Assembly: GCF_963921235.1 (NCBI RefSeq)
Contig: NC_086101.1
Coordinates: forward strand, 15,872,001-15,936,000
DNA from: Mobula hypostoma
Taxonomy: Eukaryota
Reading direction: 5' to 3'
DNA length: 64,000 nucleotides
A model generated the notes under the pieces. The model had not been told where the DNA came from. It searched no databases and was given only the letters and a program-made list of their open reading frames with translations. Shown here in pieces: positions 8,426 to 48,100 of the stretch; positions within the stretch are counted from its first letter, which is position 1, and each line of letters opens with the position of its first letter. The translations under genes were made by a program, and so were the position numbers.

Positions 8426-8453
8426 CAAACAGAAACAGAAATCCTTGTCATAT

Positions 8454-8537
8454 TCATGACCCAACTGCTGAGAGCATGGTTGAGGACCTGCTTCTCTCCC
8501 AATTTTCCTCACCACCTGTTGGTTCAGTCCCATCTTC
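8454..8537 (-). CDS. Putative terminal cytoplasmic exon (EDGTEPTGGEENWERSRSSTMLSAVGS*), frameshifted relative to paralog
   Basis: NAGNAG acceptor ccgtgttttcagtag|GAA conserved in the paralog at 63143; phase 0 matches the upstream exon. Confidence 0.55.
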   Translation of the reverse strand, partial: EDGTEPTGGEENWERSRSSTMLSAVGS

Positions 8538-9415: not shown

Positions 9416-9453
9416 TTGGTTTGTGTTTTCTTCAGGCTGGAGGCTACGTTTTG
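9416..9453 (-). CDS. 38-nt cytoplasmic micro-exon ((A)KRSLQPEENTNQ)
   Basis: Acceptor tttgtttctttctctaattcacag, donor CAA|GTAAGA; phase 1 to 0. Confidence 0.65.
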
Positions 9454-10212: not shown

Positions 10213-10247
10213 CTGTCACGTTCAGCTCGTCGTAGCCGTAATCCTGC
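10213..10247 (-). CDS. 35-nt cytoplasmic micro-exon ((R)QDYGYDELNVT)
   Basis: Acceptor cccacttcctctggcag (alternative AG 4 nt downstream), donor CAG|GTGAGC; phase 2 to 1; YxxL motif. Confidence 0.65.
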
Positions 10248-11972: not shown

Positions 11973-12070
11973 TCCAAATCGCCATCTTCCACCGATGTTT
12001 TGGCAGGACCTTGGTATTTGGAGTAACTTGGATGTATCACTGCATACTGGATGCGCTCTACAGTGGGTAC
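11973..12070 (-). CDS. 98-nt cytoplasmic exon carrying an ITIM (VPTVERIQYAVIHPSYSKYQGPAKTSVEDGDL)
   Basis: Acceptor tctttttctccacaag, donor GGA|GTGAGT; phase 0 to 2; IQYAVI fits (I/V/L/S)xYxx(I/V/L). Confidence 0.7.
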
Positions 12071-16770: not shown

Positions 16771-17816
16771 AACTGAAGGAAGAGTGAGTAAGGGATTTGA
16801 AAGCTGGAGGGGGAGGGGGAGATGCAAAATGATAGGAGAAGACAGGAGGGGGAGGGATGGAGCCGAGAGCTGGACAGGTGATAGGCAAAAGGGGATACGA
16901 GAGGATCATGGGACAGGAGGTCCGGGAAGAAAGACGGGGGGGGGGGGGATGACCCAGAGGATGGGCAAGAGGTATATTCAGAGGGACAGAGGGAGAAAAA
17001 GGAGAGTGAGAGAAAGAATGTGTGCATAAAAATGAGTAACAGCTGGGGTACGAGGGGGAGGTGGGGCCTAGCGGAAGTCAGAGAAGTCAATGTTCATGTC
17101 ATCAGGTTGGAGGCTACCCAGACGGAATATAAGGTGTTGTTCCTCCAACCTGAGTGTGGCTTCATCTTTACAGTAGAGGAGGCCGTGGATAGACATGTCA
17201 GAATGGGAATGGGATGTGGAATTAAAATGTGTGGCCACTGGGAGATCCTGCTTTCTCTGGCGGACAGAGCGTAGATGGTCAGCAAAGCGGTCTCCCAGTC
17301 TGCGTCGGGTCTCACCAATATATAAAAGGCCACATCGGGAGCACCGGATGCAGTATATCACCCCAGTCGACTCACAGGTGAAGTGATGCCTCACCTGGAA
17401 GGACTGTTTGGGGCCCTGAATGGTGGTAAGGGAGGAAGTGTAAGGGCATGTGTAGCACTTGTTCCACTTACACGGATAAGTGCCAGGAGGGAGATCAGTG
17501 GGGAGGGATGGGGGGGACGAATGGACAAGGGAGTTGCGTAGGGAGCGATCCCTGCGGAATGCAGAGGGGGGGGGGAAGGGAAAGATGTGCTTAGTGGTGG
17601 GATCCCGTTGGAGGTGGCGGAAGTTACGGAGAATAATATGTTGGACCCGGAGGCTGGTGGGGTGGTAGGTGAGGACCATGATCCTCTCGTATCCCCTTTT
17701 GCCTATCACCTGTCCAGCTCTCGGCTCTATCCCTCCCCCTCCTGTCTTCTCCTATCATTTTGCATCTCCCCCTCCCCCTCCAGCTTTCAAATCCCTTACT
17801 CACTCTTCCTTCAGTT

Positions 17817-27065: not shown

Positions 27066-27193
27066 TCAAATGCTATTACTTTCTGCTCTGAGGGTTTTGC
27101 TATGAAACAGGATGCTGCAGAGCAGGATGCTCCCTTGTATTCCAAAGGCCGCTAACAGGATCACCAGGTGAATCACGATGGCTGTCAGTTTGC
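27066..27193 (-). CDS. Transmembrane exon ((R)KLTAIVIHLVILLAAFGIQGSILLCSILFHSKTLRAESNSI*)
   Basis: Acceptor ttgtttctccccccacag; phase 1; ~23-aa hydrophobic stretch; stop at 27068-27066, or internal donor GAAA|GTAATA at 27080. Confidence 0.8.
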
Positions 27194-27993
27194 CTGTGGG
27201 GGGAGAAACAACTCAGAACACATGAGCACAAATGGGCCATTTGGCCCTTCGAGACTGGTGAGGAATGCAATGATATGGTAGATGACCTGGAAGTGTAGCC
27301 ACTGATGAAATCATTCCTGTCACTGCCGCAGCTCCTCCTCCCAATTCCAGGACAGAGGATGAGCGAGAGGTGCTAAAATCACATCCAGCATTGATCTTTG
27401 AGTAACATTTATCCCAGTCCTACACTAATCCCATTTATTTTCCTATTAATTTTACTAATAACTGATCCTCCCCACCATCCTTTCAAATCCCCTGAGTTTC
27501 TACCACTTCCGAACACACTGGGAGCAATTTACAGCAATCAGTTAAACCACCAACCCATACATCTTTGCTACGTGGGAGGAAATCAGAGCACCCGAAGGTG
27601 AGGGTTGGCCACACTGACACAGGAATAATCCATTGAAGATAGGACAGGACAGAGAGGGAGGCAGACAGTATGTGACCCACTGCCCCACCTAGTCCCAGTG
27701 AGGACAGAGGACAGTGTGTGACCCACTGACTTGCTCTATAATCTGCACACTGAGCCAATCATTGTTGATGTGTTGATAAGTGTTTGATCTCCAGCCAGTC
27801 ACCCCAATGTAATTCTTGTTATCTGTAGTCTCCCATCTACATTCAGCAATGGTCAGTCAGTCCCGTTGGTGATGACACTGGAAGTGAAGGTAGGAAATCG
27901 GACAGGGCTCCACGAATAGAAAGTTGATGGGATGGGTGGATGTTGGTGGGTGGTAATAAGCTCAGTATTGTCTCGGGCTGGGGAACCACTCAC

Positions 27994-28323
27994 GTGTGTG
28001 ACTCACTGTCAGCCATACTCCTTCTCCGATTTCCTCGCCAATCCCGTCTATCCGTACTTTGCAGTAGTACATTCCTGAATTGCTCTCCCTCACGTCCACC
28101 AGCTTTATGGAAGCTTTGAAGGAATCCTCCTGGTCAGGCCCAAGGACGCGCCCTGAGAACTCTGCCGTCCCGTTGGAGACTTCGGATGTGTTCCTGTACC
28201 AGCTGTAGAACACAGCGTCTCCGGTGTGATTGGCATTATGGCTACAGACCATGAGCACTGTTTCACCCTCACCTGCAAATATTCTGGCCTGGCCTTGCGT
28301 AACCGTGAAGCTCTTGCTTTTTC
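27994..28323 (-). CDS. NCR3-like: Ig V (VJ-type) exon 2 of NKp30-like receptor
   Basis: C-W-C core (MVC, SWY, YYC); EVSNGTAEFSGRV and KVRIDGIGEEIGEGVWLTV resemble NKp30 EVRNGTPEFRGRL and RVEVLGLGVGTGNGTRLVV; acceptor cccattgcag, donor C|GTGAGT; phase 1-1. Confidence 0.9.
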
Positions 28324-28759
28324 CTGCAATGGGAAAGGAGAAAGTCAATGCCTCCCGTTTGGAAGTTGGCCGTTGGGGTGAGAATTAAGGCCCAGTGCTG
28401 AAGACTGGACACATTCAATATTTCAGATTTTTTGTTGTCAATCGTTAGTTCAAGAGTTTAATGGAGGATGAAATCTTTGTTTCTCCAGTTCTGATGCAGC
28501 ATTAAAAAGAGACAATAAGAATAAAAACAAATAAATATATAAATATACACCCATCCTATAAAACACAATGTACAAGTAACTGTAAAGTGACAGGACGTGG
28601 GAAGGGTGCTGAGGGCTGTGGAGAGGAGTGGCTGATGTGGATGTAGTGGTGGTGGGGTGGGTTAATGGTGGAGGTGTTGGTCAACCTGATAACATTGGGG
28701 GAAGTATCTGCTTTTCAGTCTAGTCCTTGATGGTGGGCAGTCTGATGCCGAGGATGTGT

Positions 28760-29960
28760 TCCATATTTTGAAGAGTTCAGTTGACAAGCTCTTCATTGGC
28801 TCGTCATATGAAGAGTGTTTGATGGCTCTGGGCCTGTATTCTCTGGAACTTTGAAGAAAGCGGTGTGACCTCATTGAAACCTATCGAATGGTGAAAGGCC
28901 TGAGAATGTGGAGAGGATGTTTCCTCTGGTGGGAGAGTCTAAGATGTGAGGACACAGCCTCAGAAATGAGAAGCATCCTTTTAGAACAGAGATGAGGAGG
29001 AATTTCTTTGGCCAGAGAGTGGTGAATCTGTGGAATTCTTTGCCACAGGCTCCTGTGGGGGCCACGTGTTTATGTACATTTAAGGCAGAGGTTGATAGAT
29101 TCTTGTTTGGTCTGTGCGTTAAGGGATACGGGAGAAGGCAGGAGATTAAGGCTGAGAGGAAAATGGATCAGACATGATGAAATGGCAGATCAGACTCAAT
29201 GGGCCAAATGGACTAATTCTACACCTATATCTTGTGGTGTTATTTAACTACCTGCTGTAGAGTTGTCCTATCCATCACTGTGAGTTTCTGTACCACACAG
29301 CGATCCAGCATGTTAGGATGCTCTCTACTGTGCATTCAAACACGTTCCATAACCTGGGCATCTGAACTTCCCTCTGCAACTCTATTCTTGCCATCCTCAC
29401 TGGGAAACCAGAGTCTGTGCGGGTTGGAAATATCATCGCCGCCTCGCTGACGATCAACACTGGTGTATCTCAAGGATGCATGCTTGGCCCACTGCTCTAC
29501 TATCTCTACACTGAAATTTGTGTGGCTAGGCACAGCTCAATTGCAATTTATAAATTTGCTGTTGTCACATCTATTCTTGGCAAAATTTTAGATGGTGATG
29601 AGGAGGTGTACAGGAGTAAGAAAGACCAGCTGGTTAAGTGGTGTTGCAACAACAACCTTGAATTTAATATCAATAAGACCAAGAAATTGATTGTGTACTT
29701 CATGAAGAGGAAGCCAAGGGAACACACCCCAGTCCTCATCAGAAGTGGAAATGGTGATCAGTTCTTGGGTGTCACCATCCCTGTGGATCTATCCTGGGCC
29801 CGGTATATTGATCCAATTACAAAGATGGTACAACATAGGCTATATTGTATTTTGAGTTCTTGGAGATTTGGTATATCATCAAAGATACTTGCAGATTTGC
29901 AGATTTCTACCGAATTACTAACTGACTGCATTACTGCCTGACATCGAGCGGCCACTGCAC
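28760..29960. mobile_element. CR1 3' end (+) followed by inverted Rex1 fragments
   Basis: MRRNFFGQRVVNLWNSL; NTGVSQGCMLGPLLY; ESILTCWI on minus. Confidence 0.75.
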
Positions 29961-31384
29961 AAGACTGTAAAAAGTTGCATAAAGTTTTATTTATATCGTA
30001 ATCTATAGATTTTATTATTATGTATTTCATGACATCTGCCAGTGATATTAAACCTGATTCCATTCTCATTCTCATCCTACATGCTTCATCGTTGTGTGTT
30101 ATGGAAGTTTGTGAGTATTGATGTCCAGCTCTCTTCAGCATTCTCAGAAAATTGAGATTCCAGTGACAGACCACAAGTCTCTCTCTGAGATGCAGGGAAT
30201 ATCTTCCCCTATCAGGGATTATTGTCCTAGCAGGGTGGGGTCCAGTCTCAACAAAGGAGCTGGCTATTTGGGATACATGGGTCCATGAGCTGAGCTGCAG
30301 AGTATGTTCAAACAGAGTTTGACAGATTCTGCCTTCCACCACTGTGATTTTGGAACCAGAGTTTTCCCATTCCAATGAAGAACACACCAGATGCTGCAGG
30401 AAATCAGTGGGTCGGCCAGCCACTGTGGGGGGAGAAATTTCCGGTCGTCTGGACTGAAAGACTGAAGAGAATTGGCCAGAAACAAAAAGGTAATGGGGAA
30501 GGAGTGGAGCAAGTGCAGGCTGGATCCAGGTGAGGAGGAGGTGATAGGCAGAAGGAGGAAGGAAGATGGAGGTAGTGATGGAGGCTGGGAGGTGGGAGGT
30601 AGAAATGATAAAGTACTGCAGATGTTGGAGTTTTAGAACTGAGGTCTCAGCATTTCGTTATTGTGCGTTTCTTGCCCTGTTTGTAGGGATAACGGAGTAG
30701 ATCAGGAGGAGGGGAAAAGGGTCAGGGGGGAGCAGTTTGCAGGAGGTTCAAGAATTCAAAGTTCACACTGTCAGCTTGTTGACAATCCAGGGGGAAGTAG
30801 AAGATGACGTTCCTCTAGCTTGCGTTTGAGCTGACCCTGACTGAAGAGACTGAGGATAGATGCGTTTGTGTGGAGATGGGGAGTGGAAATGAAGTGGGTA
30901 GCAAATGAGAATGGGAACATCATCCATACAAGCTCGAGTGAGCTTGTGTCAGTCACCATAGAAGCAACAACTTGCCCAAATATCCTGCAGGCATCCTTCA
31001 AGGAGAGAAATGGATGATCTCAAACCGGGAATTTACCGCTCAACACTTCTTGGCCCATCTGAAAGTAGCTGCCCAGTTCAAAGGCAAAGGAGGGGGATAG
31101 AATCGCCCCACATGGTGGGTAATCTGGCAGACTTCAGAAAGGGTAAGATGAGAGAACGCGGAACAATCTGTATAAAGGGATCAGAAGTGGAGAGTGTAAG
31201 CAATTTCAAGTTCCTGAGTGTCAATATCTCTGAGGATCTAACCTGGCCCCAACATATTGATGCAGCGATAAAGAAGGCAAGGCAGCAGCTGCATTTTATT
31301 GGGAATTTATGGAGATTTGTTTTGTTAAGTAAAACACTTGTAAACTTCTACCGATGTACCATGAGGAGCACAATATAGTCCGGT

Positions 31385-31800
31385 GAAACTTTGGAAGAAT
31401 GAGGTGGTAAAACATGAGCAGAAATATTTTAACAAAGACTGTTATTGTGCTATGGACTGGGCAGTTCAGTAGTTACTATTTTAAAAATATTAGATAGTAC
31501 TGTACAGGAACTTCGGTAAACAATGCTGTGCCAAACTAATTGGTGAACAGATGTCCAATTAAACTAACCCTTCCCAACATAATGTCTGTATCCTTCATTT
31601 CCTGTACATCCATGTACCTGCTTAAGAGCCTGTTGAATGCCTGATTGTATCTGTCTGTGAAAAACACTTGCCCACACTTCTCCTTTGAACATATCCCCTC
31701 TCACTTAAAGTTCATGCCCTCTGGAATCGGACATTTCCCCTGTGACAATGATATCAATTGTCTGCTCTGTCTGTCTCTAATAAGCTATAAACCTCTATCA
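31385..31800. repeat. Local direct repeat, copy 1
   Basis: Similar to 38961-39430, including the gaaactttggaagaatgaggtggtaaaac head and the CR1 remnant that follows. Confidence 0.75.
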
Positions 31801-32149
31801 GCTTAGAGGCATCAGCGGCAACGGAAGACAGGCGGATCACCGCCAAACGCGCTGAGTCCCTTCTCCTTGTGTGAGGGTTTTTCTTTAAAACTGTAGCTGG
31901 TGCACAGGAGCAGGAAGTGTTGGAGGCATCGGCAGCAGTGGAAGGCAGGCAGAGCACCACCAAACGTAATGAGTTCCTTCTCCTTGAGTGGGGATTTTTC
32001 TTATTTTTTAAACCATTAAAGAGATGTTGGGTCCAGCGGAGTGGCTATCTTTGAAGTGGCCATCCTCAGAGTGGGACAAGAAGAGGCTGAGGCCAAAGAA
32101 ACAGGTAGGAAGGGTAGGTTATTTCCTTTCGTTATTGCTCATTTGTTCT

Positions 32150-35100
32150 TGGCTGCCCATAGTCCAGTGGAGGCAGGATGGCAGATATGGCAGTGGAATG
32201 CTGCTCTTGCAGGATGAGGGAATTCATGGAACCTGATAGTCTCCCTGATGACTACACCCGTGGGAAGTGCAGCCAACTCCAGCTCATGAAATACCACATT
32301 GAAGAGCTGGAACTGGAGGTAGATGACCAATGGATCATCCGGAGGGAGGCAAACTGATACATAAGACTATTGAGTTACACCGAGAGTGCAGAATTCAGGG
32401 AGGAGATGGGTGAACACCGAAAAGATAAAGAGAGAAAGAAATCAGTGCATGGTCCCCCTGTGGCCATTCCCTCAGCAACAGGTATAACCCTTTGGATACT
32501 GCTGAGGGGGGTGACCTACCTGGACAAGGCAGCAACAACCAGACCAATAGGACTGTGATCGGCTCTGAGCCTCAGAAGAGTAGGGTGAAGTCAGGCGAAG
32601 CAATAGTCATCGGGGACTTGATAGTTAGGGTGACAGATAGGAGACTCTGTGGCAGCAAAAGAGACACCAGGATAGTTGTCTTCCGGGTACGAGGGTCCTG
32701 GATGTCTCTGAGTGGTGGGAGAATATTCTTGAAGGGGAGGGTTAGAAGCCAGAGGTCTGGTTCCATTGTACTGGTACCAATGACCTAGGCAGGAGAGTGG
32801 TAGAGGTCCTGTGCAATAAGATTAGAAGGTTAGGAAGGTGGTTGAAGAGCAGGACTTCCAACGTCCTCTGGATTACTCCCTGTGCCACGAGCTAGGGAAG
32901 GCCAGGAAGACAGTGCTGAAGAATGAATGGCTGAGGAGATGGTACAGGGAGTAGAGTGTCAAGTTCTTAGATCATTGGAATCTTTCTGGGGAAGGGGTGA
33001 CCTGTACAAGTGGGACGGGTTGCACCTGAACGGGAGGGGAACCAATAACCTGGGAGGAAGGTTTGCTAGTGGGTTTAAACGGGATTTGCAGGGGGGTGGG
33101 AACCAAAGTGAAAAGGCAATGGATGGGGCGGTTGGTGCATAAGTAGAAACAGCTTGCAGGGAGTTTCTGCGGAAGGACAGGCAGATGATAGAGCAAAGAT
33201 GCACTCAGCCAGATGGTTTGAGATGTGTCTATTTTAATGCAAGGAATATCATAAATAAGGCGGATAAACTTAGGGAGTGGATCAATACATGGAACTATGA
33301 CATTGTGGGCATTATAGAGACTTGGCTATCTCAGGGGCAGGAATAGCTGCTGAGAGCGTTGGGCTTTAGATGATACAAAATGAACAGGGCCGGCGGTAAA
33401 ATAGATGGGTGTGTGACATTGCTAATCAGGGATAGTGTCACGGCTGCAGTAAAGGAGGAAGTCTTGGAGGGATTCTCTACTCAGTCTGTGGGGGGAGAAA
33501 CAGAAACGGAAAGAGGGTAATTACTCTACTGCGCGTTTTTATAGACCTTTCCCCTATAGTAACAGAGACATCGTGGAGCAGATAGGGAGGCAGATTCTGG
33601 AAGGGTGGAATAATAAGAAGGTTGCTGTGATGGGTGGTTTTAATTTTCCTAAGTGGCATCTCCTTAGAGCAAGGGGTTTGGATGGGGTAGAGTTTGTTAG
33701 TTGTTTCCTGATGCAATATGTAGATGCATCAACCAGAGGAGAGGCTATACTTGATCTGGTATTGGGAAATGTAGCTGGTCAGGTTTCAGATCTCCCGGTG
33801 GGAGAGTATTTTGGAGGTAGTGTTCGCAAATCTATCTCCTTTACCATAGGGCTGGAGAGGGATAGGTGCACACAATTTGGGGAAACATTGAATTGGGATA
33901 AGGGGAGATATGATGCTATTAGGCAGTAATTTGGGAGCAGATGTTTTCAGGGAAGTGCATGGCAGAAATGTGGTAAATGTTCAGGGAAAATTTGCATGGC
34001 GTTCCTCATAGGTGTGTTTCATTGAGGCAGGGAAAGGATGGTGGGGTTAAAGAACCATGGTGTACAAAGGATATAGAAAATATCGATAAGATGAAAAAAA
34101 AGTTTACGAAAGGTTCTGTTCTAGGTACTGTTCGAGCTCTAGAAAATTATAAGGTTGCTAGGAAGGATCTTAAGAATGAAAATAGGAGACCTAGAAGGAG
34201 CCACGAGAAGGCCTCAGTGAGAAGGATTAAGGAAAATCCCAAGGCATTTTACAAGTATGTGAAGAGCAGGAGGATGAGCCATGTGGGAATAGGACCAATC
34301 AGGTGCGATAGTGGAATCATGTGCATGGAGTCGGAGGCGGAAGCAGAGGTACTTAATGAAAACTTTGCTTCAGTATTCATTAGGCAAAGAACCTTGGCAG
34401 TTGTACGGATGGCGTACAGCACACTAAACCGCCTGAGCATATAGACCTTAAGAAAGAGGATGTGTTGGAGCTTTTGAACAGTATTAATTCAGATAAGTCG
34501 CTGGGACCAGACAAAATATACCCCAGGCTATTGTGGACAGTAAGAAAGGAGATTGCTGAGCCTCTGGTGATGATCTTTGCATCACTAATAGGGATGGGAG
34601 AAGCTGCAAATGCTGTTCCCCTGTTCAAGAAAGGGAGTAGAGATAACACAGGAAATTATAGACAAGTGAGTCTTATTTCAGTGGTGGGCAAGTTGTTGGA
34701 GAAGATTCTGAGAGGCAGGATTTATGAGCATTTGGAGAGGCATAACCTGATTAGGGATGTCAGCATGGCTTTGTCAAGGACAGGTCATGCCTTACAAGCC
34801 TGATTGAATTCTTTGTGGATGTAACAAAATATATTGATGAAGGTAGTAGTGGATGTACTGTATATGGATTTCAGCAAGGCATTTGATAAGGTTCTCCATG
34901 CAAGGCTCATTCAGAAATTAAGAAGACATGGTATCCAAGGAGACTTTGCATTGTGGATTCAGAATTGGCTTGCCCACAGAAGGTAAGGGCTGTAGATAGT
35001 TTGCATTCTATATGGAGGTCAGTGATGTGGTGTTCAGCAGGGATCTGTTCTAGGACCCTTTCCTCTTTGACATTTTTATAAATGACCTGAATTAGGAAGT

Positions 35101-35260
35101 AAAAATGTTGGTTAGTAAGTTTGCTGATGACACAGAAGTTAGAGGTGTTGTGAATATTCTGGAGGGCTGTCAGCGATTACAGCGGGACATTGATAGGATA
35201 CAGAACTGGCTGAGAAATGGCAGGTGGATTTCAACCGAGATAATGCAGACAGAAAATAAC
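32150..35260 (+). mobile_element. Old near-full-length CR1 (ORF1 with esterase-like region + ORF2), heavily decayed
   Basis: GKCSQLQL..ELELE and VIGDLIVRVTDRRLCG (ORF1); [17 protein letters not shown] and VSKFADDT (RT). Confidence 0.8.
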
Positions 35261-36257
35261 ATGCAAGGTAGATTGTGTTGTATTTTAATGCACACAGCAG
35301 AAGGAATAAAATGGACGATCTTGAAATTCAGCTACAGATCGGCAAATATGAAGTTGCGGCCATCTCTGAAACTTGACTAAAGGATTGCTGCCAGTGGGAG
35401 CTTAACGTCCAAGGATATACAGCATATTGGATAGATAGGTTAGTAGGCAGAGGGGGTGATGTGGCTCTGTGTATAAGATATAATATTAAATCATTGGAAA
35501 GAGATGACACAGAATTGGAAGGTGTAGAGTCTCTATGGGTTGAGTTAAGAAACGGCAAAGGTAAAAGGACCCTAATTGCAGTTGTGTACAGGCCTCCAAA
35601 AACAGCAGCCGGGATGTGGATTACAAATTACAGCAGAAGATTCAAAAGGGCAATGTCGTAATGATCTTTCTTTCTTTATTAATCTTTTTATTGATTTAAA
35701 AGGAACATAAATACAAACAAGAGGAGAATTACCTCAAAAAATATATATATCAATAACAATACAAACTGAGATTAAGATGGACATTATCAAAATCATACAT
35801 AGTGTTAAGCTAGTATATAACATATACTAAAAAAAGGAAACAGCGAACATCCTCTTATCAGTTCATGAAGAGGAAAGAAAAAACTTTGAATTTTAAATGA
35901 GGAACAATAACCCCACTACACTGTGCAAAAATAAAAGAAACAAACAAAAAAAGACAGGACTGGGCAGTTCATTCTGAGGATACGACCAAAAAAAAAGAAA
36001 GAAAGACTTTCTGATCAAATCTGAAACTTTGAAAAATAAGAGATTGAAAGAGTAATAAATCAAATTAAATGAAAATATTGGATAAAAGGTCACCAGATTT
36101 GCTCAAATTTAAAGGATGTATCAAATGTCCGACTTCTTATTTTCTCTAAACTTAAACATGACGTAATGGAGGAGAGCCAATAGAAGACCGTAGGTGGATT
36201 AGAATCCTTCCACTTCAATAAAATGGCTCTCCTCGCCAGTAAGGTCGAAAAGGCTCT

Positions 36258-36655
36258 CATACTTGTTGAAGGGATGGAACTGGACTCTCTCACGGTGGTG
36301 TCTGAAAAGAGGATGCTGTCTAAATTGCATGCCATCTTGGTCAATGTCTCCCATCCAATACATAATGTACTGGGTGGGCACAGGAGTACATTCAGCCAGA
36401 GACTCATTCCTCCAACATGCAGCACAGAGCGTCATTCCTGCCTGTGGCCATCAAACTTTACAACTCCTCCCTTGGAGGGTCAGACACCCTGAGCTGATAG
36501 GCTGGTCCTGGATTTATTTCATAATTTACTGGCATAATTTACATATTACTATTTAACTATTTATGGTTCTATTACTATTTATTATTTATGGTGCAACTGT
36601 AACGAAAACCAATTTCCCCCGGGATCAATAAAGTATGACTATCTATCTATCTATC
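36258..36655 (+). mobile_element. Rex1-type 3' end nested in L1
   Basis: LTVVSEKRMLSKLHAIL; (ctat)n tail. Confidence 0.65.
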
Positions 36656-37501
36656 TATACGTTGAGCGGAAACAGGAATATTTCCTGCTTCCGGTGGGAT
36701 AATCCCAAAAATTGCCATAAGCAAATTAGTTTGTAGATCCAGATCAAAACTTTTGATAGCATTTTAAAAACATCTCTCCAAAAGTTATCTAGCTTTATAC
36801 AAGACCAATAGATGTGAGTTAAAGTGGCCAGCTCTGTATTACATCCGTCACAAATAGGATTGATTTTGGAGAAAATACAAGCTAGTTTATCCTTTGACAT
36901 ATGGGCCCGATGCACGACCTTGAACTGTATCAAGGAATGACGGGCACAAATAGATGAGTTATTAACCAAATGAAAAACTTTACTCTTGAAATTCCGATTC
37001 CCAAGCGCGTTTAATTTTATCATTAGATATCATTCATGAGTTCAGTAACTGTTTATAGATTATAGCTGTCAACCCATTTTGAAATGGTTTAAACAGAAAG
37101 AGAAAGTCCGTCATATTAGGTGGATAAGCAGAAGGGTAATTTGGCAACAAACCATGTCAAAAATTCCTAATTTGTGAATATCTAAAAAAATATACATTTG
37201 ATAAATCATATTTATCCACTAACTGAAAAAAGACATTAAACAGTCCCCTAAAAACAAATCTGAAAAAGTTATTATTCCCTTGGTTTTCTAAATTAAAAAG
37301 GTCTTATCCAAAATTGATGGTTTAAAAAAAACAATTGAGATGGATATTACTAGAAAGGATAAAATTATTTAACTCAAAATCTGCGCAACTGAAACCAAAT
37401 TCTTAATGTATTTTAATAATGGGATTAAAATCTTGTCTACTAATCTTAGAAAACAAAAAGGGACGAGGAGCTCCCAGTATAGTGGCCAAACAGAATCCTT
37501 T

Positions 37502-37727
37502 GCAACACACATGAAAGTTGCTGGTGAACGCAGCAGGCCAGGCAGCATCTCTAGGAAGAGGTACAGTCAACGTTTTGGGCCGAGACCCTTCGTCAGGAGG
37601 AAGGGTCTCGTCCCGAAACGTCAACTGTACCTCTTCCTAGAGATGCTGCCTGGCCTGCTGCGTTCACCAGCAACTTTTATGTGTGTTGCTTGATATTCCA
37701 GCATCTGCAGATTTCCTCGTGTTAAAG
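37502..37727. mobile_element. Palindromic Penelope-derived element nested in L1
   Basis: Head-to-head pseudo-LTR ends; 10-bp TSD agaatccttt at 37492-37501 and 37728-37737. Confidence 0.8.
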
Positions 37728-37914
37728 AGAATCCTTTCACCAAGTTTTCCTCCAAATCCAACCATGAAGGACATTCATGTATATTCGAATAGTGAATCCA
37801 AAAAGTAATATATCGAATATTAATTGCCAAATAGTACATTCTATCATTTGACAAAGCCATAACACCATCCTTTTTTTAAATTTCTGTAGTAAGGGTTTAC
37901 TCAATCAAGGGTTT

Positions 37915-38190
37915 TTATTTTATAGGCATCCGTTAGTCTCATGAGACAATGGATTTGCGCCTTGGAAAGTTTCCAGGGCGCACACCTGGGCAAAGGTTGT
38001 ATGGAAGACCGGCAGCTGCCCACGCTGCAAGTCTCCCCTCTCCACGGCACCGATGTTGTCCAAGGGAAGGGGATTAGGACCGGTGTCGTCGCAGGTCAAT
38101 TTGTGATTAAGTGCCTTGCTGAAGGAAACAGCAGGTTGCCTCAGACCTTCAGATCGCTGGACTTATGCCTTAACCACTTGGCCAACCTAA
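37915..38190. mobile_element. Short interspersed repeat, probably RTE-related
   Basis: aggcatccgttagtctcatgagac..gtctcccctctcca recurs at ~63715-63860. Confidence 0.5.
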
Positions 38191-38960
38191 AAGCTAGGAT
38201 TTTTATTGTTCCAAATATAAGATAAGATTATAGAATCTACTCTATCAAAGAACTTTTTAGGAACAAAGGAAGGAACTGCTTGAAATATATATAAGAATTT
38301 CGGTAAAACTGTCATTTTAATAGCATTAATTCGACCTATTACTGATAATGTCATCGGCGACCATTTAGAAAGCATTTGTTTGGTGTAGTCAATTTATGGG
38401 AAAAAAATTATATTTATAGAGATCCTTAAAATTTTAATAATTTTAATACCAAGATAGGGAAAGTAATTTTTAGCAATGCTGAAAGGTACTTGATGTTTTG
38501 GATCCGAGTAGTTATTAATAGGAAGTAACTCAGTTTTATGTACATTTAATTTATACCTGGAGAAACTACTGAATTCAGAAAATATAGATAACATAGAAGG
38601 AATAGATTTCCTAGGATCTGAAATATAAACTAACAGGTCATCTGCATATAAAGAAACCTTGTGTATATTGTCCACTCTCTTAATACCCTGAAAAGTATTA
38701 GAATCTCTAAGAGCAATAGCAAGGGGTTCTAAAGCCAAGTTAAATAATAAAGGGCTAAGAGGACATCCCCACTGTGTATCTCTGTATAATCTAAAACAGG
38801 GAGTTTTTTTTATTATTAGTTATAACCGCAGCCATAGGAGCATGATAGATCAATTTAATCCAGGAAATCAAACGGCAGCCAGTGATATTAATCCCGATTC
38901 TGATACTGATGCCGTTTAAGGTTCGGAACCTGCCATCAGCCGGAGTTGTCATTTGGGGTA

Positions 38961-39430
38961 GAAACTTTGAAAGAATGAGGTGGTAAAACGTGAGCAGAAA
39001 TATTTTAACAAAGAAGTGATTGGGCCATGGACTGGATAATTCAGTGGTTGCTACTTTGAAAACATTAGACAGTACCGTACAGTAACGGGCCCTTCGGTAA
39101 TCAATGTTGTGACAAACTAATTGGTGACCAGATGTCCAATTAGACTAACCCTTCCCAACATAATGTCCATATCCCTGCACATTTCCTGCACATCCATGCG
39201 CCTGTTTAAGAGTCTGTTCAATGTTCTATTGTATCTGCCTCTACCTCGACCACCACCAGAGCATTCCAGGCACCCACCATTCTCCGTGTAAAACAATTGC
39301 CCACAGATCTTTGAACATAACCCCTCTCACTATAAATGCATTCACTCTGATATTAGACACTTTTGCCTATGAAAATGATATCAACTGTCTGCTCTGTCTG
39401 TGTCTCTTATAAATTATAAACCTCTACCAG
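38961..39430. repeat. Local direct repeat, copy 2
   Basis: See 31385-31800. Confidence 0.75.
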
Positions 39431-40299
39431 GTCTCTGCTCAGCTTCTGCTGCTCCAGAGAGAACAACCCACATTTGTCCAACCTTTCCTTATAGCACCTG
39501 CCCTCTAATCCAGATGGACTGCAGGTAAACCTCTTCTGCACCTTTTCCAAAACCTCATCCTCCTTCTTATAACGGGTGAACAGAACTGAATGCAATACCA
39601 GATGCAAACTAAATAATTATGTAAAGCTGCAAAACAACTTCGCAAGTCTGGAACTGATTACTTTGAATAATTATGGCAAGTAAGCCATAAGCCTTCTTTT
39701 CCACCCTATTAACATATCTGGCCACCTTCAAGGGAGATTTGGACTTGGACTCCAAGGTCCTTCTGCTCATTTGTACTGTTAAGGGACTTGCCACTAAGAG
39801 CGTACTCGGTGTATACATTTGAATAATATTAATGTTCAGGAGCGAACTGGGAGGTATTTGGCTGGGAAGTGTTTGCCAGGCTCTGGAGAAAAGCTGAAAC
39901 GTGGAATTGTTGGTGCATGGACTCAGTACAGGCAGAATGGGCCGAGTGTCCCCTTTTGAAAGGTCAACTCTCAATCTCCCGCCCTAGATTCTGCCTGACT
40001 TACGAGTTCCTCCTGCATTGTGTTTCGTTCATTCCAGGTTCCAGCACCTGCAGCCTCTTTGGAATTGGTATTGCTTTATTTTCTCATAATCTGAGGTACA
40101 GTGAAAAACTTGTCTTGCATACTATTCATTCTGATCAGATCATTACATGGCGCACAGTGAGGTAGTACTGTACTCGGTAAATCAATAGCAGAGTAATGTG
40201 TAACAGTGACAGAGAAAGTGCTGTGTAGGGAGACAATGTCGTAACGAGGTAAATTATGAGGTCCAGAGCCCATCTGATCATACCAGGGAACCAGTTAAT

Positions 40300-43200
40300 A
40301 GAATATAGAAGATAGAACAGTGCAGCACAGTACAGGCCCTTTGGCCCATAATGTTGTGCCGACCCTTAAACTCTGCCTCCCATATAACCCCCCGACCTTA
40401 AATTCCTCCATATACCTGTCTAGTAGTCTCTTAAACTTCACTAGTGTATCTGCCTCCACCACTGACTCAGGCAGTGCATTCCACGCACCAACCAGAGTAA
40501 AAAACCTTCCTCTAATATCACCCTTGAACTTCCCACCCCTTACCTTAAAGCCATGTCCTCTTGTATTGAGCAGTGGTGCCCTGGGGAAGAGGCGTTGGCT
40601 ATCCACTCCATCTATTCCTCTTAATATCTTGTATACCTCTATCATGTCTCCTCTCATTCTCCTTCTCTTGAGAGAGTAAAGCCCTAGCTCCCTTAATCTC
40701 TGATCATAATGCACATTCTCTAAACCAGGCAGCATCCTGGTAAATCACTGCTGTACCCTTTCCAATGCTTCCACATCCTTCCTATAGTGTGGGGACCAGA
40801 ACTGGGCACAGTACTCCAAGTGCGGCCTAACCAGAGTTTTATAGAGCTGCATCATTACCACGCGACTCTTAAGCTCTATCCCTCGACTCCATAAGCTTTC
40901 TTAACTACCCTATCTATCTGTGAGACAACTTTCAGGGATCTGTGGACATGTACTCACAGATCCTTCTGCTCCTCCATACTTCCAAATATCCAGCCATTTA
41001 CTTTGTACTCTGCTTTGGACTTTTTCCTTCTAAAGTGTACCACCTTACACTTCTCCGGGTTGAACTCCATCTGCCACTTCTCAACCCACTTCTGCATCTT
41101 ATCAATGTCTCTCTGCAATCTGCGACAATCCTCTAGACTATCCACAACACCACCAACTTTTGTGTCTTCTGCAAACTTGCCAACCCACCCTTCTACCCCA
41201 ACATCCAGGTCGTTAATAAAAATCAAGAAAAGTAGAGGTCCCAGAACAGATCCTTGTGGGACACCACTAGTCACATCCTCCAATATGAATATACCCCCTC
41301 CACCATGACCCTCTGCTTTCTGCAGGCATGCCAATTCTGAATCCATCTGGCCAAACTTCCCTGGATCCCATGCCTTCTAACTTTCTGAATAAGCCTACCG
41401 TGTGGAAACTTGTGAAATGTCTTACTAAAATCCATATAGATCACATCCACTGCACTACCCTCACCTATATACCTGGTCACCTCCTCAAAGAACTCTATCA
41501 GGCTTGTTAGACACGATCTGCCCTTCACAAAGCCATGCTGACTGTCCCTGATCAGACCATGATTCTCTAAATGCCCATAGTTCCGATCTCTCCGAATCTT
41601 TTCCAACAGCTTTCCCACCACAGACGAAAGGCTCACTGGTCTTTAATTACCCGGACTATCCCTACTAGCTTTTTTGAAAAAGGGGACAACATTCGCCTCC
41701 CTCCAATCCTCCGGTACTATTCCTGTGGACAACGAGGACATAAGGACCCAAGCCAGAGGCTCAGCAATCTCTTCCCTTGCCTCATGGAGCAGCCTGGGGA
41801 ATATTCCGTCAGGCCCCGGGGACTTATCTGTCCTAATGTATTTTATCAACTCCAACACCTCCTCTCCCTTAATATCAAAATGCTCCAGAACATCAACCTC
41901 ACTCATATTGTCCTCACCATCATCAGATTCCCTCTCATTGGTGAATATCGAAGAGAATTATTCATTGAGGACTTCGCTCACTTCCATCGCTCCAGGAAGA
42001 TCTTCCCACCTTTATCTCTAATCGGTCCTACCTTCACTCCCGTCATCCTTTTTTTCTTCACATGATTGAAGAATTCCTTGGGGTTTTCCTTTCTCCAACT
42101 CGCCAAGGCCTTCTCATGCCCCCTTCCTGCTCTCCTCAGCCCCTTGTTAAGCTCCTTTCTTGCTACCTTATATTCCTCAATAGACCCATCTGATCCTTGC
42201 TTCCTAAACCTCATGTATGCTGCCTTCTTCCACCTGTGTATATTCTCCATCTCACTTGTCACTCATGGTTCCTTCACCCTACTTATCTTCCTCACTGGGA
42301 CAAATTTATCCCTAAAATCCTGCAAGAGATCCCTAAACATTGACCACATGTCCATAATATACTTCCCTGCAAAAACTTCATCCCAATTCACACCCGCAAT
42401 TTCTAGCCTTATAGCTTCATAGTTTGCCCTTCCCTAATTAAAAATTTTCTTGTCCTTTCTGATTCTATCCTTTTCCATGATAATGTTAAAGGCCAGGGAG
42501 CGGTGGTCACTGTCCCCCAGATGCTCATCCGCTGAGAGATCTGTGACCTGTCCCGGTTCATTACCTAGTACTAGATCTAGTATGGCATTCCCCCTAGTCA
42601 GCCTGTCCACATACTGTGACAGGAATCCATCCTGGACACACTTAATAAACTCTGCCCTGTCCAAACTCTTGGAACGAATCAGGTGCCAATCAATATTAGG
42701 GAAGTTAAAATCACCCATGATAACAACCCTGTAATTTTTGCACCTTTCCAAAATCTGCCTCCCAATCTGCTCCTCTGTATCTCTGCTACTACCAGGGGGC
42801 CTATAGAATACTCCCAATAGAGTAACTGCTCCCTTCCTGTTCCTCACTTCTACCCATACTGACTCAAAAGAGGATCCTGCTACATTACCCACCCTTTCTG
42901 TAGCTGTAATAGTATCCCTGACCAGTAATGCCACCCCCTCCTTCCCTTTTCCCCCCTCTCTATCCCTTTTAAAGCACTGAAATCCAGGAATATTGAGAAT
43001 CCATTCCTGCCCTGGTGCCAGCCAAGTCTCTGTAATGGCCACTACATCATAATTCCATGTATGTATCCAAGCTCTCAGTTCATCACCTTTGTTCCTGATG
43101 CTTCTTGCATTGAAGTACATGCACTTTAGCCTTTCTGCCTTACTATATTTTCAATCATTATTCGGTTTCTCTTTCATCAAAGCCTCTTTATATGTTAGAT

Positions 43201-43660
43201 CTGGCTTTACTCCATGCACTATACTTGCAGTTCTCGCATGACCTTTATCCTTCTCCACCTTACTATCTGCTCGAACACTCTGGTTCCTGTCCCCCTGCAA
43301 ATCTGGTTTAAACACCCCGGAACAGCACTAGCAAGCCTTCCCGCAAGGATGTTAGTCCTCCTCCAGTTCAGGTGCAACCCGTCCCGTCGGAACAGGTCCC
43401 ACCTTCCCAGGAACAAGGCCCAATTGTCCAGAAACATGAAGCCCTCCCTCCTGCACCAACTCCTTAGCCACGTATTTAGCTGAATTATCTTCCCATTTCT
43501 AGCCTCACTAGCACGTGGCACAGGTAGTAATCCTGAGACTGCAACCCTGGAGGTCCTGTCCTTCAGCTTTGCACCTAACTCCCTAAATTCTCTTTGCGGG
43601 ACCTCCTCCTTCTTTGTATCCACGTCACAGGTCCCTACATGGACCACGACATCTGGCTGC
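40300..43660 (-). mobile_element. Near-full-length CR1 (ORF1 SGNH-esterase part + ORF2), disrupted
   Basis: VHVGTCD..DGLHLNWRRTNILAG (ORF1); YFNARSIRNK (EN); RT motifs; 3' tail at ~40300. Confidence 0.9.
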
Positions 43661-44316
43661 TCACCCTCCCTCTTGAGAATACTGTGAACTCGATCTGAGA
43701 GATCTCATAACAGTGGGATAGAAGCTGTCCTTGCGCCTGTCGGTATGATCTTTCAGGCTTTTGTATCTTCTGTCCAATTGGAGAGGGGGAAGGAGAGAAT
43801 GTCCTGGGTGGGTGGGGTCTTTGATTATTTTGGCGGCTTTACTGAGGCAGCAAGAAGTCAGCAGACAGAGTCCTTGGAAGGGAGATTTAATTTGTGACCA
43901 CTCACCCCCTCCACATTTTCTGTGCTGGACCAATTTTGTCATCATCCAGTTGGTGAAATTCTAACAATGAAAATTAAGAGCCTGCAGGTGCTGGAAATCT
44001 GAGGTAAGAAAACTGGATATGCTGGAAACGCTCAGCAGGTCAGGCAGCATCTATGGGAAGTGAAACAGAGTTAACACCCGAAGTGGAAGATCTTTCCTTA
44101 ACACTGGGCAACAATTGTTTACAAGATTCTACTTTCTACTTGATTACCCTCTAATACATGAGGATTGGTCACAGATCTGAACATTTTGCTGCTTCTCTCC
44201 CCAGAGTAGCTGACTGACCTGCTAAGTGACTCAAGCATTTTCCAGCCTTGACCAAATTCTGTTCGGGTGGTGGGCCTGATTTGCTTAGACAAGGAGATGC
44301 TTGATGATTGGCTTAC

Positions 44317-44655
44317 CTCTCACTGCGAGAATCGTCCCTGCCCCATACATTTTCCATTTTATTGTCTCCAACTTGCAGAAGTACATCCCAGTATCACTCG
44401 GCCGCACGTCCTTCAGTTGCATTGAAACATCTATGCTGTTAGTGGAGGGATCACCCCCTTGAGGTTTGAAGAAGCGGCCTCTGTACTCTGCTGTTTCATT
44501 GGTCACTTCTATTCCATTTTGGGCACCCTTGAACCAGTGGTATGACCATATCTTATTCGTGACATTGTGTCTGCATGGAATAACCACCGTCTCCCCTTCT
44601 GTGGCAACAATGCTGGACTTGTCCTGAATGACCACAAACTTCTCAGCACCAATGC
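44317..44655 (-). CDS. NCR3-like: Ig V (VJ-type) exon 1 of NKp30-like receptor
   Basis: IPC, YHW, YFC core; NGIEVTNETAEYRGRF; J-like YGAGTILAV; acceptor ccctgctttcag, donor G|GTAAGC; phase 1-1. Confidence 0.9.
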
Positions 44656-45199
44656 CTGAAAGCAGGGAGCAAACTTTAAAATTGGTAAATTGGTTAATTG
44701 TGGTCACATGTACTGAGGTACAGTGAAAAACTACGTTTTGTTTGCCATCCATACAGATCATTTCATCACACCGTTTCAATAAGTTAATGTAAAGGAGGAA
44801 CAATAACAGAATGGGGAAAGAAGTGTTACAATTACCGAGAAAGTGCGGATCGGAGCCTGGAAAAGAGGAACCCAGGAGTACGAGTGCACAGCTCATTGAA
44901 AGCGGCAGACAGGTAGTGAAGACAATGTTCAGTACGCTGAGCTTCAGTCAGAGCTTTGCGGACAGGAGTCCAGAAGCTATGTTTCTGTTGTACAAGTCGT
45001 TGGTGAGGCTGCACTTGGAATATTTTGTACAGAATTGGCCATCATGTTATAGATGTTATTAATTAGAAAGCGCGCAGATATGGTTTACCTGGATTTTGTC
45101 AGAATTTGGGGGCCTGAGTTACAAGGAGAGTTTGCATAGACTAGTACTTTATTCTCTGGAATGTAGGAGATTGAGGGGGTCGCCTGATAAGGGGGATGT

Positions 45200-48100
45200 A
45201 ACACAATAACGGGCATAGATATTCTGAAAACAGCATTTTTCACGGGGTGAGGATGTTGTTAACAAGAGTACATAGGTTCAAGATTAGACGGGAGAGTTTT
45301 GAAAGGGATATTAAACCATTTCTTCACGCAAATGGTTTTACATGGTTGAAATGAGCTGACAGAAATGGCGGTGGCGGCGAGTAAACTACAAACATTTTAA
45401 AGCCTTCTAGATAAGTTCATGAGTCGGAGGGATTTAGGGAGCTGTGGGGCAAACGCGGGCAGATGGGACGAGTTCGCTGGTTAACGCGATCGACAAGGAC
45501 GAGTTGGGCCGAAGGGCCTGTTTCCGTGCTAGGAGTCCACAATCACTGAGGCTAAAATTGTACAGAATAATCCAAGTGCGGCCTCACAGTCACTGGTACA
45601 TCTGTAACAAAACCTCCCAACTCCCGACCTTAAGGGATTCTGCACATGCGGGAAATCCAGAGTAACAGGACGAACTCGGGAAGTCAGGCAGCAGTTGTGG
45701 AAAGGAATAAACAGTTGACGTTTCGGGCTGAGACCCTTCATCAGAATTGGAAAGGAAGGAGGGAGAAACGAGAAGTCGACATGCTCAGCTTTCGACCTGG
45801 AATTCAGCACCCCCCCCCCAACCCGCCGTCGGCTAGTCAGGGGGTCGATGTCGGAAGCCTGGAGGCTAGAAGCCCGAACGTTTTTATTGCAGTTGGAGGA
45901 CTGTCCGTTTGTGCGCGTGGGAGGGAGGAAAGGGGCTTGTTTTGTTGCACTTTGTTGTGTTCTGTGTTGTTCTGCCGACATTGTGGACATTAATGTTGGC
46001 GCCGGAATGTGTGGCGACCCTCGCGAGCTGCCCACAGTGCCTCCGTAGGTGTGTTGGTTGTTAACGCAAATGAAGCAGACGAACCTTCCCGCTTTTCCCG
46101 CGCTGCCCATTGCCTTCTCCCCGAAGCTGCAGCCGTAAAGGAACAGAAAGCTACTTACCGGAGGAGACGGTCAGTAGCCACAGAATGGCGCCCACCTCCA
46201 TCGTTACTCCTCTAAAGCAGAGGAGATATTTAGTGTTCGCTGCTTCTCCCTTCTTACAGCCGCGCCTCCTCGTGCAACCTGTTAGAAAATTGGGAGGGAT
46301 TAAGTACTGGATTTTTCCAATTGATTTCCGAATCACTTCAGTGACGTTAGGGTCGTTGAGCGATGAGCCACGTCCTCTTCCTGGTAAGATGCCCTTTTGG
46401 ACTGATAGATTCCAAATACAGTTTCCCGTTCAAATCCCTCACCGCGCAGCGCGCGAAGAAGGCAATTCAGCCCACGCCGATCGCCTACACTACTCCAGTG
46501 CTGACTGAACCACTCATTCTCCCCAACTTCCCTTTCACCCCTCCCGTAATTCGCACCCACACTAGAGACAATTCTCAGATCCAATCCACATGTCGTAGGC
46601 ACGTGGAATGAATCGTAACACCCGGCGGTGTGGGGGGATCCGACACGGCTGGTGCACCTGCAGGGAAACAGGCGGAATATGCAAACTCCACTAATTAAAA
46701 CTGCACCAAATTTAGGGGACGAAGCCGTAGTCACAGGAGCTCCGAGAAAACAGCGCTAACATTTGCGGCAATGGTTCTACGTACCAAACCGAAATGGCTA
46801 GCGTAAGCTTACGAAACTGTCATATCTCAGTTAATGTAAATTATTTCGAATTTGACTTCAATCCCCACAACAACGTGTCACTTTAACGGAAGCGGTTAAA
46901 TAATTGGTAACATATCAATTGGTAGCTGTTGGTGAAATGGGCTGTCCAGGGAGGGGTAGCACCTCTGCTGAAGCGGCTTGACCTCTCCCGGGACAACTCA
47001 CCTACCTTTGGGTTCCACCAGACGCTCAGCTCCAAGTTCCTGTCTCCATGCGAAAGCGGCCACACTCGGTTACACCGCTTCGACAGGCGGGCTAAACCAG
47101 GTGAAGGCAGCCGGTGGACCTCATACTCGGGTGAGATAGGGAAATCCCCGTCCTATCATACGAAGGAAACTGATGGAAATCTATGGAATGGGAAACAGAA
47201 TTAATATTGATCTCATCCGCCCGACTGCACAGATGTGATCAACAGTGAGATCCAACAGCCAGGAAGGCGGTTCTGCAACACTCCGTGGACAGCGCACGGC
47301 ATTTCAATGCACGGAAGATGTCATGGTCACCCACTACAACAAAGGAAGACCCCAGTTTGTGTCGACTACTCGTACCACTGCACCCGGACATCCGAGGGCA
47401 AGAGTGTGGAACTGTCCCAGTTAACTTCCCCACGTTAGAAACCCTGCTCAGGTCTCCTGTGATTGTTGGTACGCCGGAAAACCGCCAACAAACGAATCAC
47501 GTCGTTCACACCTCTTGACCGAATAGATACAACGATTAATACAGAATATTGTAGATTTTGGGAATCTGAAATAGAAACAGAAAATGTTTTTAAAAACTCA
47601 GCAGGTCAAGCGCCATCTGCGGAGAGAGAAACAATTAATATTTCTATCCTGAGCCAGAGCGAGACGTTAACGTTTCCGTTTCGCCTGAAGGATCACAGAA
47701 CTGTAAACATTAATTCTGTTTCCCATTCCATGGACTCCCATTATTTTCTGTTTTATTAGGAATTAGGGAAGGTTCCACAATTCGATGCAGTCCGCAATTC
47801 GTCAGGGAATGGGGATTACGGGAGTTTTATATCGTCGAAGATAGATTCACCCCGATCCCTCCCGGAAGAGGGATAACCTTAATAATTAATAAAGGTTTAA
47901 TTCAAATTCTACCTTTGCTCTTTATCAGGTAAATTATCCGAAAGTCCACATGCGTCCGAGATGACAACTCCCTGCCGATAAATCCGGCTTGCTTTCAGAT
48001 GTCAACTAACTTTGCACTAGATCTTTACCCCGCTCCCACCCTTGCCTGTCTCACAGCGTCCGGTTTCCGGCCGCCTGTAAAACTAGTCGCTCAGCGTTCG

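Follow-up and report, generated by a model that had tools for sequence, protein, structure and literature searches.

A two-V-domain NCR3/NKp30-like receptor gene, probably short-tailed, in the ray Mobula hypostoma

A 64,000-nt stretch of contig NC_086101.1 of the ray Mobula hypostoma (assembly GCF_963921235.1, positions 15,872,001-15,936,000), referred to below as the window and numbered from its first position, carries on its minus strand a gene for a predicted receptor of the NCR3/NKp30 family. The leader, first variable-domain (V1), second variable-domain (V2) and transmembrane (TM) exons follow each other in that order (Table 1) and contribute 43, 339, 330 and 128 coding nt to an 840-nt coding sequence, which is translated into 279 aa and a stop. 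Every exon junction is in phase 1 and all flanks are of the AG/exon/GT type, with the donors CCG/GTAAGT (leader), GAG/GTAAGC (V1) and ACG/GTGAGT (V2) and the acceptors TTTCAG/ (V1), TTGCAG/ (V2) and CCACAG/ (TM). A phase-1 splice with GT-AG sites into an open 279-aa frame had been proposed in a preliminary description of the locus, and joining the exons bore this out; the observation of a four-exon open gene is confirmed. Because V1 is 96.5% identical to the RefSeq protein XP_062903900.1 (P0002 among the relatives cited below), the gene lies far beyond chance. Domain and tblastn scans of the window found no other cellular genes.

Table 1. Positions of the receptor gene, of the downstream tail exons and of mobile-element pieces in the window. 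ITIM, immunoreceptor tyrosine-based inhibitory motif; LINE, long interspersed nuclear element; HMM, hidden Markov model; ORF, open reading frame; RT, reverse transcriptase; UTR, untranslated region.
Feature	Position (nt)	Strand	Description and evidence
Exon 1, 5' UTR and leader	46159..46279	minus	ATG at 46201, 43 coding nt, donor 46159/46158
Exon 2, V1	44317..44655	minus	membrane-distal VJ-type V-set domain, 113 aa; Pfam V-set E 9e-11
Intron 2	28324..44316	minus	15,993 nt, LINE fragments; domain and tblastn/HMM scans
Exon 3, V2	27994..28323	minus	membrane-proximal VJ-type V-set domain, 110 aa; Pfam V-set E 5e-12
Exon 4, TM	27066..27193	minus	TM segment IVIHLVILLAAFGIQGSIL and 13-aa tail; stop 27068-27066
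Tail exon T1	11973..12070	minus	VPTVERIQYAVIHPSYSKYQGPAKTSVEDGDL.., ITIM IQYAVI; 82% identical to P0002 residues 362-395; phase 0 in, 2 out
Tail exon T2	10213..10247	minus	QDYGYDELNVT, YxxL; 90% identical to P0002 residues 396-405
Tail exon T3	9416..9453	minus	AKRSLQPEENTNQ, then donor CAA/GTAAGA; 92% identical to P0002 C-terminus
Decayed CR1-like LINE, esterase	43222-43647	minus	same strand as gene; domain scan
Decayed CR1-like LINE, endonuclease	42437-43120	minus	domain scan
Decayed CR1-like LINE, RT pieces	38397-41636	minus	domain scan
Decayed CR1-like LINE, zf-RVT	36658-37023	minus	domain scan
Further RT piece	34462-34800		in V1-V2 intron; domain scan
GIY-YIG ORF (Penelope-like element) and two LINE RT/endonuclease blocks	17071-17709; 20293-20997; 24695-26264	minus; minus; plus	between TM and tail exons
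Retroelement integrase, two adjoining ORFs	6863-8533	minus	H2C2 zinc finger, rve core, p58 C-terminal domain; just downstream of tail exons

Both V exons encode the canonical Cys pair, the Trp, the YxC motif and a J-like G.G..L.V end, the letters of the J-like strand being YGAGT.. and IGEGV.., respectively. Because the J-like end sits inside each V exon, the two domains are of the germline-joined VJ type, as the preliminary description had it, and each exon is open from strand A to the G.G..L.V end. V1 features Cys42/Cys108 and the sequons NVT and NET, and V2 features Cys154/Cys215 and the sequons NHT, NTS and NGT (five N-glycan sequons in all in the predicted protein). The identity between V1 and V2 is 41%, in agreement with the strong divergence claimed earlier. 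V1 passes into V2 without a linker (..AVRG/KSKSF..), the V2 end ..SHTR abuts the TM start KLTAIVIH, and there is no stalk. The single hydrophobic stretch of the protein is IVIHLVILLAAFGIQGSIL, which contains one His. The V1-V2 intron, previously put at about 16 kb and described as filled with transposable elements, has the length given in Table 1 and holds LINE endonuclease, esterase and RT pieces.

V2 was used as the query in a profile-free search of 1.84 billion proteins, and all 20 of the 20 single-V matches that were looked up were elasmobranch family members or named NCR3. The named NCR3 among the V2 matches came from nurse shark (QTT61898.1 and QTT61904.1), bamboo shark, turtles, frog, lungfish, possum and guinea pig; shark relatives of V2 carry the names 'NCR3-like', 'SIRP-like' or 'uncharacterized'. 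Among solved structures V2 matched human NKp30 best (E 6e-8), and the HMMER alignment of the two shares EV.NGT.EF.GR, DVR, Y.C.V and the G.G...G.G end. Identities to nurse-shark NCR3 are 39% for V1 (QTT61898) and 36% for V2 (QTT61904), and V1 reaches 44-46% against shark distal V domains.

The check by phylogeny with elasmobranch NCR3 that the preliminary description had suggested was carried out with two trees, a quick one of 143 domains and a careful one of 81, both without a named SIRP, T-cell receptor (TCR) or immunoglobulin (Ig) V outgroup, and V1 and V2 group with nurse-shark NCR3. In the careful tree the ray V1-type domains and the ray V2-type domains each form a clade with 100/100 support, and both lie within an elasmobranch clade (ultrafast bootstrap 85, Shimodaira-Hasegawa-like approximate likelihood ratio test 84) that holds both nurse-shark NCR3 proteins. 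In both trees tetrapod NCR3 falls outside this clade and the other Ig domains lie further out; the split of all NCR3 from other Ig domains is weakly supported (52/71). The earlier assignment of both domains to the NCR3/NKp30 family agrees with this clade and with the top structure match of V2. A clade of V2 with the shark proximal V domains was not rejected by the approximately unbiased test (p = 0.17), and the split into distal and proximal V types is possibly older than the divergence of sharks and rays.

The NKp30-like motif EVxNxTxE[FY]xGR, claimed earlier for both domains, is present in V1 (EVTNETAEYRGR) and V2 (EVSNGTAEFSGR) and also in human NKp30 (EVRNGTPEFRGR). A loose form of it occurs in 11 of the 12 named NCR3 domains and in 29 of the 37 family V domains, and in none of 40 distant Ig domains. 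In an AlphaFold2 model of the V1-V2 pair of P0002 (predicted local distance difference test 86, predicted template modelling score 0.58), the two V folds are not arranged like an Fv, and a Foldseek search of PDB with this pair model returned only diabodies and single-chain variable fragments (scFv) at a template modelling score of about 0.37, which is uninformative on family placement. Nurse-shark NCR3 resembles the ray domains in its single-exon, non-rearranging VJ-type V with the EVxNxTxEFxGR motif, whereas QTT61898 and QTT61904 differ from the present gene in having one V domain, a stalk between V and TM and, in one of the two, a Lys in the TM segment. The nurse-shark NCR3 gene set is cited as GenBank MT914154-61 (PMC12227049), and QTT61898 and QTT61904 may belong to that set. 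Judged from these comparisons, the assignment as a two-V NCR3-like gene is well supported.

Mammalian NKp30 combines a single V domain and a stalk with a short tail and with a TM Arg for pairing with CD3-zeta or FcR-gamma. This architecture is not found here, with two V domains, no stalk and His in place of Arg; the short tail does match. Human NKp30 (PDB 3NOI, 3PV6, 9FWW) is, like the predicted protein, a type I receptor whose tail is short and whose TM segment has a basic residue close to its outer end; it is unlike the predicted protein in the single V domain with stalk and in the TM Arg instead of His.

The closest relatives are annotated in rays. P0002 (M. hypostoma LOC134346462, 'uncharacterized protein', 419 aa) has the order leader-V1-V2-TM-tail, as does P0156, a RefSeq model of Hypanus sabinus; P0155, P0157 and P0158 of Mobula and Hemitrygon have the order V1-V1'-V2; and P0001 (XP_062903898.1 of M. 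hypostoma, named 'pIgR-like') has V1 followed by four V2-type domains, which are non-identical and group together in the trees. The P0001 model has no TM segment, and such five-V chains may be secreted or incompletely modelled. A V2-type domain is never N-terminal in the six batoid proteins (6/6), and the number of V domains in the family (2, 3 or 5) would change by exon duplication. P0002 shares with the present copy 15/15 leader residues, 96.5% of V1 (4 changes in 113 residues), 87.5% of V2 and 60% of the TM segment, as well as the leader-V1-V2-TM order and the joining of the V domains without a linker. It differs in a TM segment without His and in a tail of about 140 residues with IYTPM, the ITIM IQYAVI and YDELNV, whereas the present copy stops 13 residues after the TM segment and no middle tail exons were found for it. 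From these likenesses in sequence the gene is taken to be one paralogue in a ray cluster of NCR3/NKp30-like surface receptors.

The nearest counterpart of the 3' part is P0157 of Hemitrygon akajei (a 534-aa model), whose TM segment KLT.IVIHLVILL.AFGIQGSILL is 78% identical, has the His in the same place and is followed by the same abrupt ending (..LRAENQGI and stop in P0157, ..LRAESNSI and stop here). P0157 differs in its three V domains (V1-V1'-V2), in a probably artefactual N-terminal extension and in belonging to another genus. The His-bearing TM segment with a prompt stop thus recurs in Hemitrygon, and three ray proteins with a non-His TM segment have long tails, two of them with an ITIM. 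No further short-tailed members with a TM His were found in the protein collections, so that two are known, the present copy and P0157. A stretch at 48149-48054 (minus), which precedes the leader exon by 1.9 kb, matches residues 2-33 of the N-terminal extension of P0157 at 62% identity; the two may have an upstream exon or a repeat in common.

Multi-V relatives also occur in sharks, namely a Heterodontus francisci 'protein turtle homolog B-like' with three V domains, Scyliorhinus canicula LOC119975535 with two, and a Chiloscyllium plagiosum 'SIRP beta-1-like' with two and an Arg in the TM segment. They resemble the ray gene in their tandem VJ-type V domains of the same clade and in the split into distal and proximal V types; the IGS and F[FIL]H motifs, which correspond to NKp30 contacts, are retained in the shark distal V domains and not in ray V1. 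Databases already model relatives with two to five V domains in rays and sharks, under uninformative names. A long tail module (IY.PM.SLKTFSNS.., the ITIM [IV][QH]YA.[IL] and DYGYDELN[VI]T) is conserved from sharks to rays (P0002, P0156, P0004, P0018 and P0159); the sharks with this module are Scyliorhinus, Heterodontus and Chiloscyllium, and it looks like an ancient inhibitory tail of the family.

If the gene is transcribed, the leader, V1, V2 and TM exons would be spliced in that order, and the product would be a type I membrane protein with two unlike glycosylated V domains arranged head to tail and a single TM helix with one His. V1 would bind a cell-surface ligand, and V2 may serve as a second site or, standing in for the stalk of NKp30, as a spacer. 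The most probable C-terminus of this copy is a 13-residue tail without a signalling motif, and the copy may be the short-tailed partner, in a paired-receptor arrangement, of ITIM-tailed paralogues with near-identical V1. In paired sets of the KIR, SIRP and PIR type, members with opposite tails, of which one has an ITIM, have almost the same ligand-binding domain. Here, a near-identical binding domain likewise goes with opposite tails, as V1 is 96.5% and the TM segment 60% identical to P0002, and the tails of P0002 and P0156 carry I(Q/H)YAVI whereas the present copy and P0157 have short, motif-free tails. Taken as a whole, a two-V, NCR3-like, short-tailed membrane receptor that is a paralogue in a ray cluster is considered the probable reading of the locus.

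Several findings weigh against it; those on expression and on the 3' end are given with the alternatives below, and three concern the family and the mode of signalling. Against solved structures, a profile built from ten V1-type domains scored scFv and SIRP-alpha (1e-8) higher than NKp30. Receptors that pair with adaptors normally use a TM Arg or Lys, and the only polar candidate in this one is the His. The TM segment of shark relatives contains Arg (P0006, P0055) or Lys (P0069, P0153), and in a hand alignment the Arg of P0006 and P0055 sits where the present TM segment has His; judged from this alignment, the His may be a remnant of, or a substitute for, an adaptor-pairing residue. Finally, human NKp30 contacts B7-H6 through Ile50, Gly51, Ser52, Val53, Leu80, Ser82, Phe85, Leu86, Glu111, Leu113 and Gly114 (PMC3135353), and in the alignment these residues are mostly replaced in V1 and V2. 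At the contact positions V1 reads IWSY, without the Phe-Leu pair, and V2 reads VFYS, with one Phe kept and a four-residue gap. IGS and the F-hydrophobic pair are kept in mammals, a turtle and shark distal V domains, and nurse-shark NCR3 keeps an IGS-type motif and the Phe; the shark membrane-proximal V domains share the four-residue gap of V2 and its C(S/T)H(N/T) motif. The loss of contacts argues against assuming B7-H6-type docking, not against common descent.

RNA evidence consisted of assembled contigs aligned on two exon groups and included three RNA runs of the window's species; the DNA runs of this species contain a fraction of 0.6-0.74 of the V2 words. The leader-V1 joint 46159/44655 was seen in an RNA contig (96% alike), another contig matches exon 1 over 46161-46262, and the translated 5' UTR of P0001 aligns at 46279-46157 in tblastn. 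The V2-TM joint 27994/27193 occurs in contigs of both species compared, with a divergent TM start (e.g., letters coding KLKPVT). Two Mobula-like species also have contigs with a joint that leads from the end of one V2-like exon back to the start of another (27995 to 28324, 330 back), as expected because a P0001-like gene has repeated V2-type domains. Because the joint-bearing contigs are 88-96% identical to the window (4-12% different), they stem from paralogues, and the splice logic of the family is shown by these paralogue contigs. Thus, of the junctions proposed earlier for mapping, 46159/44655 and 27994/27193 were recovered from paralogues, and 44317/28323 was not among the contig joints listed, one contig reaching 28 letters past 44317. 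For this copy itself, transcription and the V1-V2 joint are putative.

Two negatives raise the question of a silent or decaying copy: no long RNA contig matching the exons at 99% or more was found in the three RNA runs of the species, and no annotated product of the gene was found in the protein collections searched, which would have flagged a protein encoded in the window. Under this alternative the exons are open and the gene is hardly expressed or not expressed at all; the middle tail exons were lost, the ITIM exons are leftovers and the gene is becoming a pseudogene. It would also account for the absence of exons for about 85 tail residues of P0002, including the IYTPMQSLKTFSNSM stretch, and of a nearby polyadenylation signal after the stop. 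The 840-nt ORF is, however, uninterrupted and has good acceptors and three strong donors, the fold-defining Cys, Trp and YxC residues are all kept in V1 and V2, V1 has only 4 changes in 113 residues against the annotated paralogue, and the model from Hemitrygon, a different ray genus, ends in the same short way. The missing contig is, moreover, weak proof, as assembled contigs lose rare transcripts, and a silent copy, though to be taken seriously, is considered rather unlikely.

At the 3' end the TM exon reads ..LRAE, SNSI and stop, and a possible phase-1 donor, AAA/GTAATA (27081/27080), lies where the codon after E begins. A transcript of a related species splices on after ..GCAGAAA, which matches this position, and no AATAAA was found within 860 nt after the stop. 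Three exons resembling the P0002 tail (T1 to T3 in Table 1), with clean AG/GT flanks and mutually consistent phases, lie about 15 kb downstream of the TM exon. These facts would suit an ITIM-tailed inhibitory product for which the donor 27081/27080 is used and unrecognised link exons lead to 12070-9416, the 279-aa form being a read-through by-product. In its favour are also the 82-92% identity of the three exons to the P0002 tail, with IQYAVI and YDEL, and the conservation of the tail module from sharks to rays. The TM donor is, however, in phase 1 and T1 starts in phase 0, so that a direct joint is out of frame; the donor lacks G at -1 and +5; and no exon linking TM to T1 was found in 27066-12071 by tblastn, for which five family tails served as queries (E 50), by exact matching of CTGATT, with which the exon begins in a relative, or by a phase-aware acceptor scan, although these scans were able to pick up exons of 10-13 residues. 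Look-alikes at 26877-26810 were rejected as a link exon, being within a repeat, and so was AG/CTGATT at 13911, which runs into a stop after six codons. An ITIM-tailed product is accordingly held to be unlikely, and the short-tailed product is mildly favoured over it and over a silent copy. Of the 279-aa end as first described, the open ORF stands, and its ending is shared with the Hemitrygon model; the stop nevertheless lies past a possible donor, the counterpart of which is used in the transcript of a relative.

The joins leader-V1-TM and leader-V2-TM stay in frame like leader-V1-V2-TM, as the preliminary description had stated and as joining the exons confirmed. It had gone on to suggest that exon choice could diversify ligand binding, which would have all three combinations made in meaningful amounts. 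Phase-1 symmetry is, however, the general rule for exons of the Ig superfamily; neither skipping joint, leader-to-V2 (46159/28323) or V1-to-TM (44317/27193), occurs in the contigs shown; the modelled isoform sets of Heterodontus (three V) and Pristiophorus (two V) keep a constant V number and differ in their tails alone; and a V2-type domain comes first in none of the six batoid proteins. Cassette use of the V exons found no backing here and is regarded as very improbable.

The unity of the gene was examined with tblastn (the four exon products and eleven family proteins), which recovered only the leader, V1, V2, TM and one tail exon near 12 kb, and with a family V-domain HMM run over every open stretch in six frames of the 64-kb window, which found no V exons besides V1 and V2. 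No second leader or TM exon was found by tblastn and HMM scan in intron 2 or in the rest of the window, including the separate leader for V2 that would speak for two genes. The scans having recovered a single leader, a pair of V exons and a single TM exon, V2 lacks its own leader, and V1 its own TM, in the 64 kb; in RefSeq, the leader-V1-V2-TM order is seen in M. hypostoma and Hypanus sabinus, and the earlier claim of one gene with two tandem V domains holds. Two separate single-V genes, V1 with a lost or unseen TM and V2 with an unseen leader, can be dismissed as scarcely credible, since the distance of 16 kb between the V exons and their identity of only 41% are set against the absence of a second leader, TM or V exon between them or elsewhere in the 64 kb and against five annotated ray proteins that fuse a V1-type domain directly to a V2-type domain.

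The short-tailed, two-V reading of this locus can be extended, speculatively, to the family. Rays might run a modular NKp30-like system, that is, a cluster with ectodomains of 2-5 V domains arising by exon duplication, in which ITIM members are paired with short-tailed members with the conserved His, this copy signals via an unknown adaptor or acts as a tail-less competitor, and the ligand is not of the B7-H6 type; this is considered doubtful at present. NKp30/NCR3 is reportedly the one natural killer (NK) cell receptor that is traceable from sharks to humans (Kinlein et al. 2021). If the extended picture were true, the oldest jawed vertebrates would possess a paired receptor system of the NK type with the oldest conserved family of NK receptors as its basis, paired inhibitory/activating logic within this family would date back to cartilaginous fish, and the lost B7-H6 docking motif in the ray domains would point to new ligands. 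If rays express chains of 2-5 unlike V domains with both tail types, the family would be structurally more plastic than described. The single-exon VJ domain of NCR3 has been used to model the ancestral antigen-receptor V gene (PMC12227049, PMC10751288). As far as the accessible part of the literature goes, the published picture is of one V domain per NCR3 chain, and no paper describing a tandem-V NCR3 was found in it. The gain from the present locus is smaller, namely one unannotated member and a second example of the short-tailed type with a TM His.

The mobile-element pieces listed in Table 1 are accompanied by a few minor features. A leader-like LWLLTL at 32754 was rejected for want of an ATG-plus-donor context. 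A leader-like peptide, MELSVILWCLSL, at 3785-3820 on the plus strand is followed by no V exon on that strand and is probably due to chance. The V1-V2 intron contains an inverted repeat at 37502-37689 with 93-nt arms that are 94% complementary and 2 nt apart, a near-perfect hairpin-forming arrangement. A short, very abundantly transcribed repeat in intron 1 (45620-45761), on which the RNA contig depths of the four runs sum to 3,400-56,000, is SINE-like (short interspersed nuclear element) and unrelated to the gene.

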